DNA from: Oculina patagonica
Taxonomy: Eukaryota
Direction of reading: 5' to 3'
Length of the DNA: 64,000 nt
NCBI RefSeq assembly: GCF_052425735.1
Contig: NC_135758.1
Span: 36,332,001 to 36,396,000 of the forward strand
The notes under the pieces: model-generated
The model's input: the letters and a program-made list of their open reading frames with translations, nothing else
Databases searched by the model: none
Told to the model about the DNA's origin: nothing
Shown: positions 25,798 through 33,451 of the stretch, in pieces
Position numbering within the stretch: position 1 is the stretch's first letter
Layout: each line of letters starts with the position of its first letter
Position numbers and translations under genes: made by a program

Positions 25798-26649
25798 GAC
25801 ATACAACACCTACAATGCACATATGCAAGTAGCCAAAAAAGTGAGAAAAGTCGCCAGGAAGTTTTTCTTACAGCCCCTTTTCCCCTCCCATGGACTGAAA
25901 GAAAATCATGAATTTCAAAATGCAGCCTGAAAATTGATTGCTGTCCTTTAATTTATTGCACAACGAAAGCAGTCAGGGAGCCAAAAGTTAAAATCATCCA
26001 ATCCGAGTGCTCCATTGCACTCTCACAGCCTATTGTTAAACCGAATCGATTAGCGCGAATTAATTACTGGTATGCAAATAACTACACACGTGTGTAGCGA
26101 TATCTTTTCTTTCTTTTTCTTCTTTTATTGTGATATCTTTTCTTGATTTTATTCCATATGGTCAAAATCAGAAAATATCTTTGTCTTTATAATACAGGAA
26201 TTTGAAGTAATACAAGGAATTTGAAGTATTATTATTAAGAGAAATAAACCGTAACACGAATCTAAATCTAAATCGTAATCGTAATCGAAACGCGATTCTA
26301 AGGTATGTACTGCCATCAATGAAACCTTTAGTATCTACTTTTTTGAGTTTCCAAGAAAGAGTGCGTAAAATCATACTATCACCCAATTCAAGATATTCTA
26401 TCACGTTACATTACAAGGAACACTGAAAATCGCGAAATTAATTCAAGTTACATATATACGTAGTCGGCGAAAATAAAAGAATAGCAAAATATTGAAAAAG
26501 AAAGTTACACAAAGACACAAAAATGTGAAGAGATGTAACCAAAAAATAACATGAAAATTGACTCGAACGCAACATAATATCAGTTTCATTGAGGCTAATT
26601 AGCACGCATTAGAGTTCGGCGAATAATCTTCATCCTTTGGCCTTCGACC

Positions 26650-26970
26650 CTAATGAGAGCCAAGCGACTTTTCCAATCCAAACTCGTACCTGACATTTTG
26701 CAATTCAAGATGAGGAAGGGCAGCAAAATACTCGGCAGGCATTAGCATCACGCAGATACTATTTCTTCGTTGTTGCGTTAGATCGTTCATCGGTGCTGTA
26801 AAATTCTCTAGTCCCCTTATCGGCTTGTTGGTTGGTACGGACTGATTCAGTTTTTCAGCGGGTATTTTGTTGTGGTTTTCCGCTTGCTCTCCAAACTTTC
26901 TCTTTTGTTGAAGATACGGAGAAATTGACTGGGGAAGCAGAAGCCGCTTAGATTTTCCTTGTGGCTCCAT
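26650..26970 (-). CDS. Unknown 106-aa intronless protein (paralog 1 of RRNSIC-LMPAE family)
   Basis: First ATG at 26970 (MEPQGKSK...). Frame is conserved with paralog 2 across an in-frame indel. Upstream CArG, CCAAT and TATA-like motifs; AATAAA (minus strand) at ~26150 is conserved in the duplicate. Confidence 0.7.
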   Translation of the reverse strand: MEPQGKSKRLLLPQSISPYLQQKRKFGEQAENHNKIPAEKLNQSVPTNKPIRGLENFTAPMNDLTQQRRNSICVMLMPAEYFAALPHLELQNVRYEFGLEKSLGSH

Positions 26971-27133
26971 AGGATTGCAACGACTCGCCAGCAAGGAAGA
27001 ACTGGACTGCTTAGTATTGCACAATTTACGATGAAGAAGCGGACATGCAAAGAATCATATAATTGGCATCTTTGGAGCCAATAGGAGTTGGGAAAGACGA
27101 GATCTTGCGCAAGAGAGAACAGTGTAAACAGCA

Positions 27134-27170
27134 CCAAATAAGGCACCGTCCTGCGGTACAAATAACCAAT
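27134..27170. promoter_or_regulatory. CArG box (CCAAATAAGG) + CCAAT module upstream of paralog 1
   Basis: Exact CC(A/T)6GG at 27134-27143 and CCAAT at 27166-27170. The module recurs at 30813-30849 and 31077-31115. Confidence 0.55.
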
Positions 27171-27356
27171 CACAATCAACGGCTAATCATGCATGACTCA
27201 AAATGCAAACAATTCACAGTGCCTACTAGCCAAAACAGAAAAGTCCTATCGGAGGGCAACCATAACACAAAATCCCTTCATTTTGCTACCCTAACACAAA
27301 ACGCCTTATTTTGTTACACGCTTTAAAAGAGGTCAATCCAGGCATCCCACAGTGAT

Positions 27357-29245
27357 GTCAAGTGTTGCAAGGTCAAAGTTTCCCACGTGCGACGCGCGAG
27401 AGATCTGGGTGACGGCTTCTCTTACACGTGTATGTTTATGTAACAAGTGTCAATTATGTAACTGGAGTTCGGTAATATTAGATCGAAAGAAAAACTCACA
27501 CAGTTTTGTCAAGTGTCGGAATTCGAAGGTCAAAGTTTCCAACGTGTGACGCGCGAGAGATCTGGTGACGGCTTTTATTACACGTGTATGATTGTGTAAT
27601 GTCAATTATGAAACTAGAGATCGGGTAATATTAGATCGATAAAAAACTCTCACGGTGTTGTCAAGGGACGAAAGGTCAAAGTCCCGGGTCAAAGTTTCCC
27701 ATGTGCGACGCGTGAGAGATCTGGTGACCGCTTCTATTACACGTGTATGATTATGTAAGATGATTATGTAACAAATGTCAATAGGCCATTTCCGAGTTAC
27801 CCTTTGCCTCTGTTTCAAAACGAGTCTACGTGCGAAACTATTCAAATGAAAATGAGTTTGACTTGCATGAAAATGGGCCTGAAGGTGAAACTCATTTTCA
27901 TATAAATGGTTTCGCACGTAGACTCGCTTTGAGACAGAGGCAAAGGGTAACTCGGAAATGGCCTATTATGTAACTAGAGATCGGGTAATATTAGATCAGT
28001 AGAAATGCTCACACGGTGTTGTCAAGGGTCGGAAGGTCAAAGTTTCCCACGTGTGACACGCGATGGATCTGGTGACGGCTTTAGTTACACGTGTATGATT
28101 ATGTAAAACGATTATGTAACAAATGTCAATTATGTAACTAGAGATCGGGTAATATTGGGTTGATAGAAAAACTCACACGGTGTTGTCAAGTGTCTAAAGG
28201 TCGAGGTTTTCCACATGCGACGCGCGAGAGATCTGGTTACGGCTTGTATGATTATGTTCTGGTGATTATATAACAAATGTCAATAATGTAACTAGAGATC
28301 GGGTAATATTGGGTTGATAGAAAAACTCATACGGTGATGTCAAGTGTCTAAAGGTCGAAGTTTACCACATGCGACGCGCGAGAGATCTGGTGACCGCTTC
28401 TATTACACGTGTATGATTATGTAACAAATGACAATTATGTAACTAGAGATCAAACGGTGATGTCAAGTGTCTGAAGGTCAAAGTTTCCCACGTGCGACGC
28501 GCGAGGGATTCCATTACACGTGTATGATTATGTAAGACGATTATGCAATGTCAATTATGTAACTAGATCGGGTAATATTATATTAGATCGATAGAAAAAA
28601 ATTCACACTGTGGTGTCAAGTGTCTGAAGGTCAAGGTTTCCTTCGTGGGACGTGCGAAAATGGTATGACGGCTTCAATTACACGTGTATGATTATGTAAG
28701 ACGATTGTGTAACAAATGCCAATTATGTAACTGGAGTTCGGGTAATATTGGGTTGATAGAAAAACTCACACGGTGTTGTCAAGTGTCTGAAGGTCAAAGT
28801 TTCCCACGTGTGACGCGCGAGAGATCTGGTGACGGCTTTTATTACACGTGTATGATTATGTAAGACGATTGTGTAACAAATGCCAATTATGTAACTAGAG
28901 ATCGGGTAATATTGGGTTGATAGAAAAACTCACACGGTGTTGTCAAGTGTCTGAAGGTCAAAGTTTCCCACGTGCGACGCGCGAGAGATCTGGTGACGGC
29001 TTTTATTACACGTATATGATTATGTAAGATGATTATGTAATGTCAATTATGAAACTAGAGATCGGGTAATATTAGATCGATAGAAAAACTCACACTGTGT
29101 TGTCAAGGGTCGGAAGGTAAAAGTTTCCACGTGCGACACGCGAGGGATCTGGTGACGGCTTCTATTTCACGTGTATGATTATGTAAGGTGATTATGAGTG
29201 TCAATTATGTAACTAGAGATCGGGTAATATTAGATCGATAGAAAA
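27357..29245. repeat. Minisatellite, ~11 units of ~160 bp, rich in CACGTG and ATTATGTAA
   Basis: Unit gtcaagtgtctgaaggtcaaagtttcccacgtg.gacgcgcgagagatctggtgacggctt..attacacgtgtatgattatgtaa..caattatgtaactagagatcgggtaatatt; for example, 28779 to 28942 is 163 bp. Confidence 0.9.
27781..27966. mobile_element. Palindromic MITE inserted into one minisatellite unit
   Basis: ataggccatttccgagttaccctttgcctctg...cagaggcaaagggtaactcggaaatggcctat interrupts the unit motif tcaattatgtaac. A partial relative lies at ~5928-6000. Confidence 0.8.
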
Positions 29246-30344
29246 ACGATTTTGTTGGACTTGTTGAGTACAAACGCAATAATACTTGAGTACTGTACAA
29301 AGATTTTCTACAGACTGTCAACGAAGGAATAAAGAACTTTTATACAGTTCTCAGGTTGTGAGTGGAATTATTACGAATAGTCCGGCAACACTAAATGGAA
29401 AATCTCAAAAAATCATGCCTTGATCACCGATGGCCTTAAAACGCAATTTTGCTTCTGACTGCACACATGCCTTGCTCAACATTTCCAGCAAAAAGTTCCA
29501 AATTAATCTAACACATTAAAGTACTAAAAATTGTATAACAAGGGGACGCTCCCCATGCACACGGAGCAACAAAAAGTTGGAAATGTCGCTAGGAGTTTTT
29601 CCAACTGCCCCCTTCCCTGGATTGAAGGGAAAACAAATGAAAACGGAGCCTGAAACGTGATTACTGCCTAGTATGACAAAATACATGGCATTTCCAAGTA
29701 TCATAACAGGACTTACACTCTCACAACAGATTCGCTGAACTGCATAAATGAGTGCGCTTAACTTACCAGCTGGTATATCAAATTATTACGGAACATTTTT
29801 TTTCTTGATTTTATTACATATGGTCAAAGTGTGAAAAATTACATCACTGTGAAAATAATAAAAAAAAACTAAAGTATCGTCATTACAAGAAATAAACTGT
29901 TGGGCACCGATAAAGTAACGCCAATCTTAATCTTGAGTCGGTGAATTTGATTTTAACAAAATCGAATTGGGTTAATGTCGATACTGCCATCAATGAAACT
30001 TTCAGCATCAGCCTATTTACATTTCCAAGGAAAAACTACGTTAAAATGATAGTAACACACAAATCAAGAATTTCCATCACGGTACATTACAAGAAAAAAA
30101 ATCGTAGCGCTAAAATTCGCGATTAACTCAAATTCAAGTTACGAAATCGGCGAAAAATATATAAAAAAGTTACATCACTGTAAAGTTATCTTAGCTGTAC
30201 ACAAAGACACACAACAAAAATTGTAACAATATGAAGAGATTTCTCCGCAAAAAGCTTGAAAATTGACAGCGTAAAATCAGTTCCATTTGGATTTGTTAGC
30301 ACGCATTAGAGTTCTGCGAATAATCATCATTCTCTGTCTTTACC

Positions 30345-30671
30345 TTAATCAGTGTCAAGCGACTTTTCCAAACCAAACTCGTACCTGACATTTAACAATT
30401 CAAGATGAGGAAGGGCAGCAAAATACTCGGCAGGCATTAGCATCACGCAGATACTATTTCTTCGTTGTTGCTGTGGATCGTTCATCGATGATGTAACACT
30501 TTCGGGTCCCCTCATCGGCTTGTTGCTTGGTGGAGACTGATTCATCTTTTCAGCGGGTATTTTGTACTCTTTTCCTTCTTGCTTTCTGATCTTTTTCTTC
30601 CGTTGGAAATACGGAGAACTTGACAGAGGTGGAAGATAAAGTGGCCGTTTAGATTTCTCGTGTGGCTCCAT
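30345..30671 (-). CDS. Unknown 108-aa intronless protein (paralog 2 of RRNSIC-LMPAE family)
   Basis: First ATG at 30671 (MEPHEKSK...). The C-terminal QQRRNSICVMLMPAEYFAALPHLEL.NVRYEFGLEKSL is shared with paralog 1. The duplication extends through promoter and 3' flank (~26100-27180 vs ~29790-30855). Confidence 0.7.
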   Translation of the reverse strand: MEPHEKSKRPLYLPPLSSSPYFQRKKKIRKQEGKEYKIPAEKMNQSPPSNKPMRGPESVTSSMNDPQQQRRNSICVMLMPAEYFAALPHLELLNVRYEFGLEKSLDTD

Positions 30672-30812
30672 GGGCTTGCTACGGCAAGTGCGGTCGGCAA
30701 GGAAGAATGATTGCTCAGTACTGTACAATGTATGGTGAAAAATCGGGCGTTCAAAGAATTATATGAGCTGAAAAAGGAAGTTCTTACGCACGTCGAACAG
30801 TGAAAAATAACA

Positions 30813-31115
30813 CCAAATAAGGCACCGGCCTGCGCTACAAATAACCAATCACAACCTGTTCTTTTGATGTAAAGCGCATGCTTGCGTATAAACCATAATT
30901 TCATCGTATGTCAGTTATTACACCAACTTTGGGTAGTAGTGAAGCGTGAAGCAACTACAAAAAGTAAATATTTTAATATCGTTGTAAAAGACGACCCTTT
31001 GTGCAACAAAACAGAAAACTTAAAACATTCGAGGCTAAGGAAAACTGAGAACTTATACTCGTGGCGGAAGGCCAACCCAAATAAGGCACACTGTCCCGCG
31101 CTTCAAATAGCCAAT
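30813..31115. promoter_or_regulatory. Two CArG + CCAAT modules upstream of paralog 2
   Basis: CCAAATAAGG at 30813 and 31077; CCAAT at 30845 and 31111. Confidence 0.5.
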
Positions 31116-32034
31116 CACAAGCAGGTTGTTTTCTATGTCATGCGCAGGCATATATTTATCATGAGACTTCCATGAGACTGCAAGCTGTTCCTTTTAATCA
31201 GACGTGCGGGCGCAAACGCAAGCGAACAACTATGAGCCGAGCGAGAACTGGAGGAGAGAAGAAAAAAAGGACAATATTAGTTTATTTTTAACATGTAGGA
31301 TTATCTGAATACGTCTCTTACAGAAAAGGTTGCTATTTCTTTTTCTTTTCGCTTTGCTCGCCCGATCGTTGCGTTTTCTTGTTTTTGCCCGCTCGACTGA
31401 CTGAAAAGCTAAGGGACAGCTATCAGTCTAGTATGTTTTTTTAAATCACCATAAGCCTCCTGTTTTAAAGAAAATTCGTTTTTTTATGTGAAACAGCAAA
31501 ATAGGAATACTCGGAAATTGCACAGGGCGGCGGAGCAGGGGGGGTCAGGGAGGCGCTGTAGCCACGTTTTGGTGCCGAAATATTCCGTCTCGTGAGTGAG
31601 TTCAAACATCTTCGGAACTTCCTTGGAAGTCTTCGGGAAACTTCGTTTATCTTCGGAAAAGTTTGAAAAACGATCGGAAATGTTCGCATTGCCTTCGAAC
31701 AGCAATCGGAGAATCTTCAGAAATCTTCGGTCTAGAAACTGCTCAGAAAACAAAAAGTTGCTAGCACGGAAAAAAGTTGCTTCAAATATGAAAACTTGCC
31801 GAGTATTTTTGGGACAGTCTTAGCCCTCCACGTTCCGAAACGCCCCGCCGCCTAAACGTTGTAAGAAAAAAGCTAAAAAAACGTCACAGAAAGTGACCAA
31901 AAATCCTTAATTTACACACAATTGAAACAGCCCGCGAAATGCATTTGAATGAAACTGTACGCGTAAACATACCAGTTAATATTGTTAATGTTTTTCCCTT
32001 CGCACAGTAACAAGACTTGGTTGGCATGTTACGT

Positions 32035-33019
32035 TTAAATCAGATCTGTACCTGACAGCACACTCAGCAGCTCAAGATAAGGAATGGCTCGAAGATGCTC
32101 GGCGGGCATCAACGCCGCACAAATAGCATTTCTCCTATGCTTTGAACCAACAAGCCACCCTGTAGGACTTTCACTTTCACTGCCTGTCAACTCATCAGCG
32201 GAAATTTCCCCTCCGTTTGATTTAGCAATATCACAGCATTGTCTCTTTCGTAGAAAACGCGGTGACCATGATTTCTTCAAAGCACTTTCGTTTGGTGACT
32301 TCACTGATAAAAGGCCATCATCGCACACAACGATCTCTGGATTGCTGGGATGTTCAGAAGAACTTCCACTGAACTGTTTACTGGAGGAAATGTCCTCATG
32401 ACAGTTCCTCTTCCGTAGAAAACGCGGTGACCATGATTTCTTCAATCCATTTTCACTTGGTGACTCGGGTGGTGACTTCACCGTTAAAAGGCCATCATCG
32501 CACACAACGATCTCTGGATTGCTGGGATGTTCAGAAAAACTTCCACTGATCTGTTTACTGGAGGAAATTTCCTCATGACAGTTCCTCTTCCGTAGAAAAC
32601 GCGGTGACCATGATTTCTTCAATCCATTTTCACTTGGTGACTCGGGTGGTGACTTCACCGTTAAAAGGCCATCATCGCACACAACGATCTCTGGATTGCT
32701 GGGATATTCAGAAGAACTTCCACCGACTTGTTTACTCGAGAAAATTTCTTCATTGGCATTTCCTCTTCTGTAGAAAACGTGGTGACCATGATTTCTTCAA
32801 AGTATCTTTGCTAGGTGTCTCCACTTGTAAATAGCCATCGTCACATAGGACGATCTCTGGATTGCTGGGATGTTCGGAGGAGCATTCGCTAATGTCACTA
32901 GCCTGCTTGCTCTCTGCAAGTTCCTCCACATTTGATTCAGCATCGTCATGGTATTTCTCCTTTCGTGGGAAACGTGGTGACATTGATTTCGTCGAAGTAT
33001 TTTCGCTTCCTGGACCCAT
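32035..33019 (-). CDS. Unknown ~327-aa repeat protein (paralog 3, RRNAIC variant); +1 frameshift at ~32753 as assembled
   Basis: ORFs 32750-33019 and 32035-32682 join if one extra A is removed (tgccAatgaa vs tgtcatgag in the sister repeats). Contains 180-bp/60-aa repeats and ends HRRNAICAALMPAEHLRAIPYLELL. A CRE-TATA-Inr promoter lies upstream. Confidence 0.65.
32245..32990 (-). repeat. Coding tandem repeat, 180-bp period
   Basis: SEHPSNPEIVVCDDGLL.VKSP....LKKSWSPRFLRKR is repeated; the near-identical units at ~32399 and ~32579 are 180 bp apart. Confidence 0.85.
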
Positions 33020-33110
33020 TGGTAAAAGGCAGTTGTCACATAGGACGATCTCGATTGATCAAGAAATTTGCACGTTAAAAAAAAAAAAAACAGAGCGAAG
33101 GCAAAGTCGC

Positions 33111-33174
33111 AACTGATGACACTGAAAAGTTGTTGTTACTTTATATGTTGTTTTTGATTTTCACAATGACGTCA
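33111..33174 (-). promoter_or_regulatory. CRE - TATA box - initiator core promoter for paralog 3
   Basis: TGACGTCA at 33167-33174, TATAAA at 33145-33140 and TCAGTT at 33116-33111. The Inr A at 33114 places the TATA box at -31. Confidence 0.65.
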
Positions 33175-33244
33175 CTTGTCTTTCGAAAACCAATCGATTT
33201 CCTCGACCATAATCCCTCTGGTATTAAAAAATAAAGAAAAAGCG

Positions 33245-33451
33245 AAACGTGGTGACCTTTAAATTCTTCAAAGTATGTTTGCTTCCTAGATCCATTGGTA
33301 AACGGCAGTTATTACACAGGGCGATCTCGATTGATCAAGAAATTAAAAAAAAAAAACAGATCAAGGGCAAAGTCGCAACTAATGAAAATAAAAAATTGGT
33401 TGTTTTCTTCCCTAGTTGTTGTTTTTTTTCGTTATTTTTACAATGACGTCA
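33245..33451. repeat. Degenerate duplication of the paralog-3 5' end and promoter
   Basis: Aligns with ~32968-33174 (gaaacgtggtgac..ccattggtaaa.ggcagtt..cgatctcgattgatcaagaaatt..ggcaaagtcgcaact). It keeps TGACGTCA at 33444 but has lost TATAAA. Confidence 0.75.

Follow-up and report, generated by a model that had tools for sequence, protein, structure and literature searches.

The determinants of the protein kinase inhibitor PKI include an N-terminal amphipathic helix with an aromatic residue near P-11, and an arginine at P-6, counted from the phospho-acceptor position P0. Residues 18-22 of PKI form the inhibitor site RRNAI, in which the P-3/P-2 arginine pair interacts with the acidic residues E127 and E230 in the cAMP-dependent protein kinase catalytic subunit (PKA-C), and the P+1 isoleucine fills a pocket made of Leu198, Pro202 and Leu205 (PMC12184650). 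An export signal in PKI makes PKA-C leave the nucleus (PMC7723848, PMC7234811), and the regulatory subunits RI and RII act as a pseudosubstrate and a substrate-inhibitor, respectively (PMC7723848). In the unrelated protein ARHGAP36, the sequence RRGAV confers binding and inhibition of PKA-C at an affinity comparable to that of PKI (PMC5059767), and Smoothened employs a decoy of similar kind (bioRxiv 10.1101/2021.07.05.451193). These precedents indicate that convergent PKA decoys exist and that a short RRxA-hydrophobic peptide can suffice. In the present study, we analyzed a stretch of 64,000 nucleotides from the coral Oculina patagonica (contig NC_135758.1, positions 36,332,001 to 36,396,000; hereafter the window), which carries three small paralogous genes, termed g1, g2 and g3. 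We found that these genes belong to a real, strongly conserved coral protein family without a name, and their C-terminal module contains a core, RRNA(I/V), that is identical to the PKI inhibitor site, which makes them plausible candidate regulators of cAMP signaling.

The original prediction had described three same-strand open reading frames (ORFs) between SCAI and RABGGTB that share two motifs. All three were recovered as paralogs on the minus strand, and both motifs were present in the same order in each of them and nowhere else in the 64 kb. The residues of the C-terminal module were counted in 43 aligned family members. Arginine occupied P-3 and P-2 in all 43, asparagine occupied P-1 in 38, and P+1 was isoleucine (24) or valine (18) in 42 of the 43, followed by cysteine at P+2 in 42. 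At P0, alanine (32 members), glycine (8) and serine (3) were the only residues found. The RRN-P0-(I/V)-C core was followed by the consensus LMP.EYF.ALP.LELL, with methionine (40) and proline (39) at P+6/P+7, an acidic residue (E/D, 41), tyrosine (39) and phenylalanine (42) at P+9 to P+11, and leucine (36), glutamate (38), leucine (42) and leucine (41) at P+17 to P+20. Strong conservation reached P+28, where leucine was found in 41 members. The presumed phospho-acceptor position therefore varied within a set of small residues while RRN and (I/V)C around it stayed fixed, and a small-only P0 with frozen flanks is what a phospho-acceptor pocket would impose. The proposal of substrate (RRNS) and inhibitor (RRNA) versions side by side needs one correction: serine at P0 is a rare derived state, and alanine is the common one. 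The P0 serine codon of g1 and g2, AGT, is one step from GGT (Gly), which is the P0 codon in orthologs of the same subtype (type a, see below) in other corals. For the N-terminal motif, described as SxSPx(F/L)xxK(R/K), the (F/Y)-L-x and the basic cluster behind it were conserved, whereas the SxSP part was not family-wide.

To quantify selection, we calculated the ratio of nonsynonymous to synonymous substitution rates (dN/dS) by the Nei-Gojobori method across five genes, namely g1, g2 and three orthologs or paralogs taken from other assemblies. The whole-gene ratio was 0.25-0.6. It was 0.02-0.13 in the 32-codon module (dS 0.56-1.6) and mostly 0.3-0.7 in the N-terminal half, where it rose to 1.2 against the most divergent sequence, a comparison in which the alignment is unreliable. 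These results indicated that the genes are coding and that purifying selection is concentrated on the C-terminal module, at values that are not near 1. Between g2 and g3, the module showed 68% DNA identity, saturated synonymous sites (proportion of synonymous differences, pS, 0.70), a dN of 0.24 and a dN/dS of about 0.11. The earlier argument that a motif kept in g3 despite its diverged DNA reflects selection on the protein was thus borne out.

A word-indexed search and a full hidden Markov model scan of 1.8 billion representatives returned only small unnamed proteins, about 60 sequences in total. The motif is conserved in many other corals, with intact ORFs in many assemblies. Two of the sequences belong to named species, Oculina patagonica and Desmophyllum pertusum, and the rest came from ENA, JGI and Logan assemblies. 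The genes g1, g2 and g3 are members of a taxon-restricted (scleractinian so far) family of small, mostly disordered proteins. Three subtypes were distinguished. Type a (g1 and g2) has the N-terminus ..RP.YLPPLSLSP(F/Y)L.RR.., and behind its module come NVRY.FGL and a tail that varies. Type b comprises g3 and short proteins of 70-90 aa that begin with MLSFLE.KK and stop exactly at ..LS..(G/D)L(I/V), and type c (about 107 aa) has a longer N-terminus. Tandem clusters were also found in other assemblies, with three type a genes in L004, one type b and two type a genes in L006, and two type c genes in L007. No match was obtained in Pfam at E up to 10 for the window proteins and 22 family members, no significant match appeared in PDB sequence searches with profiles and single sequences, and hits in the ESM Atlas were confined to LRR, BRCT and RT clusters at chance level, none of which reached 0.9. 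A full-text search of one literature library for the motif strings found no papers. The family was unrecognised in the original prediction, and these searches agree with that.

The proteins had also been described as probably disordered. We ran AlphaFold with the family alignment, and the models were non-globular and of low confidence, with a predicted template modeling score (pTM) of 0.2 for both proteins modeled. The g2 model had a mean predicted local distance difference test score (pLDDT) of 59, with residues 35-64 below 50, and contained one continuous helix at residues 81-98 that covers AEYFAALPHLELLNVRYE at a pLDDT of 72-86. The model of a type c member (pLDDT 63) showed long low-confidence helices, with two short helices in the C-terminal module. 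As predicted, the family members are short-motif proteins and not domains. Several known motifs were compared with the alignment by eye, and the conserved positions did not fit a MAPK D-motif, RPEL, RVxF, B56 LxxIxE or LxxLL. A neuropeptide precursor was rejected because the proteins have no signal peptide. A calcineurin PxIxIT docking motif of the form P-x-(I/V/L)-x-(I/V/L)-polar in the g3 repeats was not conserved in orthologs, since PEIVVC is replaced by EIVPC or IEIVLC in the ortholog P0015 and is absent from P0012 and P0053.

PKI (alpha/beta/gamma, PF02827) is among the known proteins that the family most resembles. Both are small (70-120 aa) and predicted to be disordered, and the coral core RRNA(I/V) equals the PKI inhibitor site at all five positions, including the unusual asparagine at P-1. 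The coral proteins also have a leucine-rich hydrophobic segment after the core. In types b and c, hydrophobic residues (M/F/L) lie at P-9/P-10, about 9-10 positions before P0, within a predicted helix that runs into RRNA, and this is loosely like the PKI helix. In contrast to PKI, the inhibitor-like site of the coral proteins is C-terminal rather than N-terminal, some members have serine or glycine at P0, and the genes lie in tandem clusters of several subtypes. PKI lacks the P+2 cysteine and the LMP.EYF.ALP.LELL block. RII sites, on the other hand, also carry a cysteine at P+2. The inhibitor sites of RI and RII further share the pattern RR-x-(A/G/S)-(I/V) with the coral core, and in both systems Ala/Gly pseudosubstrate and Ser substrate versions coexist (PMC7723848). 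Unlike RI and RII, the coral proteins have no dimerisation/docking domain and no cyclic-nucleotide-binding domains, and therefore cAMP could not relieve the inhibition. ARHGAP36 and Smoothened are comparable as unrelated proteins in which an RRxA-hydrophobic decoy that blocks PKA-C has evolved (PMC5059767; bioRxiv 10.1101/2021.07.05.451193), but there the motif lies inside large multidomain proteins, whereas the coral module is nearly the entire conserved part of a tiny protein.

Based on these comparisons, we tentatively favor, at somewhat less than an even chance, the reading that the family is specific to its lineage and acts on PKA-C in the manner of PKI, as a pseudosubstrate or substrate inhibitor or as a shuttle, under SRF- and CREB-type control, with PKA binding deduced from the motif. 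In such a mechanism, the arginines at P-3/P-2, the asparagine at P-1, the small P0 residue and the Ile/Val at P+1 would occupy the PKA-C substrate site. The Ala and Gly forms would be pseudosubstrate inhibitors, and the rarer Ser forms (g1 and g2) would be RII-like substrate-inhibitors, a derived variant. The LMP.EYF.ALP.LELL helix may extend the interface or serve as a leucine-rich export signal. The conserved F-xx-L-xx-L-x-L fits a class 1b export-signal consensus, but 6 of the 43 members have arginine at position 2. Nuclear import may be directed by the (F/Y)L-x-basic cluster at the N-terminus, and an inhibitor site combined with import and export signals would make a PKI-like shuttle. Transcription from SRF-type (g1, g2) or CREB-type (g3) promoters would turn the proteins into induced feedback regulators. 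We infer PKA binding, the transport signals and the inducibility from the sequence. A broader proposal, to which we give slightly less credence, is that an expanded family of tiny PKA-C decoys in Ala, Gly and Ser forms arose in stony corals without descent from PKI, arranged in tandem clusters under SRF- and CREB-type promoters. Signals of the cAMP and serum-response type would thereby call up a PKA brake or nuclear exporter of their own. In corals, cAMP/PKA signaling is linked with the control of pH, with calcification and symbiosis, and with responses to light. If the proposal is true, lineage-specific inducible PKA inhibitors would add a new layer of control to this signaling, and a further convergent kinase decoy would stand beside ARHGAP36 and Smoothened.

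Several observations weigh against a PKA regulator. The Pfam (E up to 10), PDB and Atlas searches revealed no homology to PKI (PF02827) or to other proteins, the PKA argument rests on a core of 5-6 residues, and the pattern RRx(S/A)-hydrophobic fits PKG and other basophilic kinases too. At P-6, the 43 members have I/L/P and no conserved arginine as in PKI. The support for expression comes from runs whose RNA label was guessed and which derive from a close relative, and one poly(A) raw-read run, which the tool rates as no test, yielded zero reads. Moreover, nothing in PKI, RI or RII corresponds to the 25 residues that are conserved behind P+2, and for this reason a different partner is a serious rival. 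The module might serve docking or regulation with such a partner: either another basophilic kinase (PKG, CaMK, RSK and others), or a protein other than a kinase to which the LMP.EYF.ALP.LELL helix is the recognised element, in which case the RR pair would belong to that interface or to a nuclear localisation signal. Conservation that continues for 28 residues past P0, far above the need of a kinase cleft, argues for such a partner, as do the lack of a sequence relation to PKI in Pfam and a confident AlphaFold helix for only the part behind the RRNA core. On the other hand, all five core positions match the PKI inhibitor site, including the asparagine at P-1 (PMC12184650), and P0 is limited to Ala, Gly and Ser, as a phospho-acceptor pocket would impose. 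We consider another partner only somewhat less likely than PKA-C.

The remaining explanations fared worse. The weak phmmer similarity between MPRDYFADLSHLELLNVLKLSG and the consensus repeats of designed ankyrins (TPLHLAADxGHLEIVEVLL), at E of about 0.8, and the two short helices in the type c model raised the question of whether the module is a degenerate single ankyrin-like helix-turn-helix that packs on a folded partner, its likeness to PKI being coincidental. We regard this as improbable, because the phmmer E-values are not significant, no Pfam Ank match appears even at E = 10, and the g2 model has one continuous helix. Furthermore, a single ankyrin repeat is not known to form a stable unit. 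The idea that the ORFs are non-functional, being decaying duplicates, transposon ORFs, or upstream exons or upstream ORFs of RABGGTB, could draw on the frame shift of g3 in this assembly, on a GenBank annotation that joins g1 to RABGGTB and on the zero reads of the poly(A) run. It is nevertheless largely refuted, and we give it hardly any credence. The module dN/dS of 0.02-0.13 holds across species, ORFs are intact in many assemblies, and the g3 frame shift is absent from another DNA data set (X9). In addition, a separate promoter block and AATAAA signal accompany each of g1 and g2, the Desmophyllum ortholog sits among other neighbors, and the Pfam scans found no transposon domains.

The predicted lengths of g1 (106 aa) and g2 (108 aa) were reproduced when counted from the first ATG of each. 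The figure of about 327 aa for g3 held for one allele but not for the window as given, where one extra base in the first 177-bp repeat unit splits the gene into two ORFs in different frames. Contigs of the DNA run X9, which has the same species label as the window, are one base shorter at 32752, and with this allele 32035-33019 is a single intact 327-aa ORF. P0015, a 253-aa g3 ortholog from another assembly, is likewise uninterrupted. By these two results, at least one allele encodes an intact g3, and the window carries either an assembly error or a polymorphism at the break. More degenerate copies of the g3 coding repeat extend upstream to about 33400, past the start codon (e.g., GAGATCG..TGTGA at 33328 and 33052), and the promoter and 5' end of g3 seem to have been born from duplication of this unit.

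In the NCBI chromosome annotation, the genes are flanked by SCAI (PF12070) and by a Prenyltrans (RABGGTB) model, as the original prediction had stated, and the GenBank gene order in this region of the chromosome is SCAI, a 286-aa gene, a 96-aa gene and the Prenyltrans gene. The closest database match of g2 is ACROYT_G003110 of Oculina patagonica (100% identity), a 96-aa model with a 3' intron spliced at AG|GTACGAG after ..LELLNV. The 286-aa model corresponds to g3, and a small intron in it skips the frame shift. The start of the RABGGTB model (422 aa, Prenyltrans) coincides with the g1 ATG (26970). It appears that g1 was joined to RABGGTB via the donor-like AG|GTACGAG site, and both gene models are probably wrong. 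The short introns in g2 and g3 and the g1-RABGGTB fusion look like prediction artefacts. An obligatory 3' splice donor in g2 was ruled out, since another coral has AGA for AGG, so that the GT is lost and the arginine is kept. Three observations favor the plain ORFs: the AGA codon keeps the arginine, the tail RY(E/Q)FGL is retained as protein in distant members, and an RNA-labelled contig is unspliced. The family is missing or mis-modelled in current coral annotations, with spurious introns, a RABGGTB fusion and absence from most named proteomes, and therefore expression studies cannot see it.

The RNA-labelled contig is 424 nt long and colinear with 30714 to 30292. It spans the whole g2 ORF, including the donor-like site and the stop codon, and its flanks are at zero depth. 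The RNA label of the contig runs is the tool's guess. When the contig differences were applied to the window, an intact 108-aa ORF resulted, and every amino-acid change lay N-terminal of RRNSIC. These results weakly suggest that g2-type genes are expressed. The original description of the genes as intronless stands for g2 on the evidence of this contig, while the GenBank models place short introns in both g2 and g3. At low depth (2.1), a further contig of an RNA-labelled run maps to 33024-33283 in the promoter region of g3, upstream of the TATA box that is predicted there, and could be upstream transcription or DNA carry-over.

The promoters had been described as signal-responsive. The CArG box of the g1/g2 type and the cAMP response element (CRE) of the g3 type were indeed conserved across species, which at the level of sequence supports this description, and factor binding and induction may follow from these elements. 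CCTTATTTGG is a perfect CC(A/T)6GG CArG 10-mer that is invariant in five type a promoters with a mean column identity of about 50%, and these promoters have an inverted CCAAT box just upstream of the CArG box and a ATATAATTC TATA-like block downstream. The g3 ortholog in L005 and one type c gene in L007 have the CRE TGACGTCA upstream as well, about as far away, and the second type c gene of L007 has half-sites of it. The features of the locus are listed in Table 1.

Table 1. Coordinates of the family genes and associated features in the window.
Feature	Position	Strand	Remarks
g1	26650-26970 including stop (CDS 26653-26970)	-	106 aa, type a, RRNSIC...LMPAEYFAALPHLELQNVRYEFGL
g2	30345-30671 including stop (CDS 30348-30671)	-	108 aa, type a
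g3 upstream ORF	32750-33019	-	89 aa, has start codon, ended by one-base frame shift near 32752
g3 downstream ORF	32035-32682	-	215 aa, no in-frame ATG; 59-aa repeats, RRNAIC..LMPAEHLRAIPYLELLSVLSGTDLI, stop; type b
g3 coding tandem repeat	32293-32800	-	177 bp (59 aa), 2.9 copies, 94% identity
CArG box CCTTATTTGG	27134-27143	-	173 nt upstream of g1 ATG, beside inverted CCAAT box
CArG box CCTTATTTGG	30813-30822	-	151 nt upstream of g2 ATG
Second CCAAT and CArG CCTTATTTGG module	31077-31120 (CArG 31077-31086)		about 410 nt upstream of g2 ATG, duplicates the proximal one
Full palindromic CRE TGACGTCA	33167-33174	-	upstream of g3; TATAAAG 22 nt downstream at 33139-33145
Minisatellite	27357-29247		lies between g2 and g1; about 12 units, each 154-164 bp
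AATAAA, likely g1 poly(A) signal	26148-26153	-	3' regions of g1 and g2 share about 70% identity
AATAAA, likely g2 poly(A) signal	29810-29815	-	

The position between SCAI and RABGGTB is not shared by the Desmophyllum ortholog, whose neighbors are a purple acid phosphatase and a UBX protein. In L007 (342-1523 and 14008-14124), the two type c genes lie between KLHL20 exons and an RPS18 exon. RPS18 is also present at the edge of the window, and KLHL20 fragments occur on other family-bearing contigs, which hints at a wider conserved linkage.

The minisatellite between g2 and g1 holds 15 of the 31 CACGTG E-boxes of the window and 20 of its 21 TTATGTAA D-box-like sites, and it may be a clock- or light-responsive enhancer array for g1. 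Between g2 and g3, a very high-copy repeat was observed at 31580-31830, with a word depth of about 25,000 in X9 compared with about 42 in its flanks. It showed many different junctions and was also found in RNA-labelled runs, and it is probably an element of the short interspersed (SINE) or miniature inverted-repeat transposable (MITE) kind.

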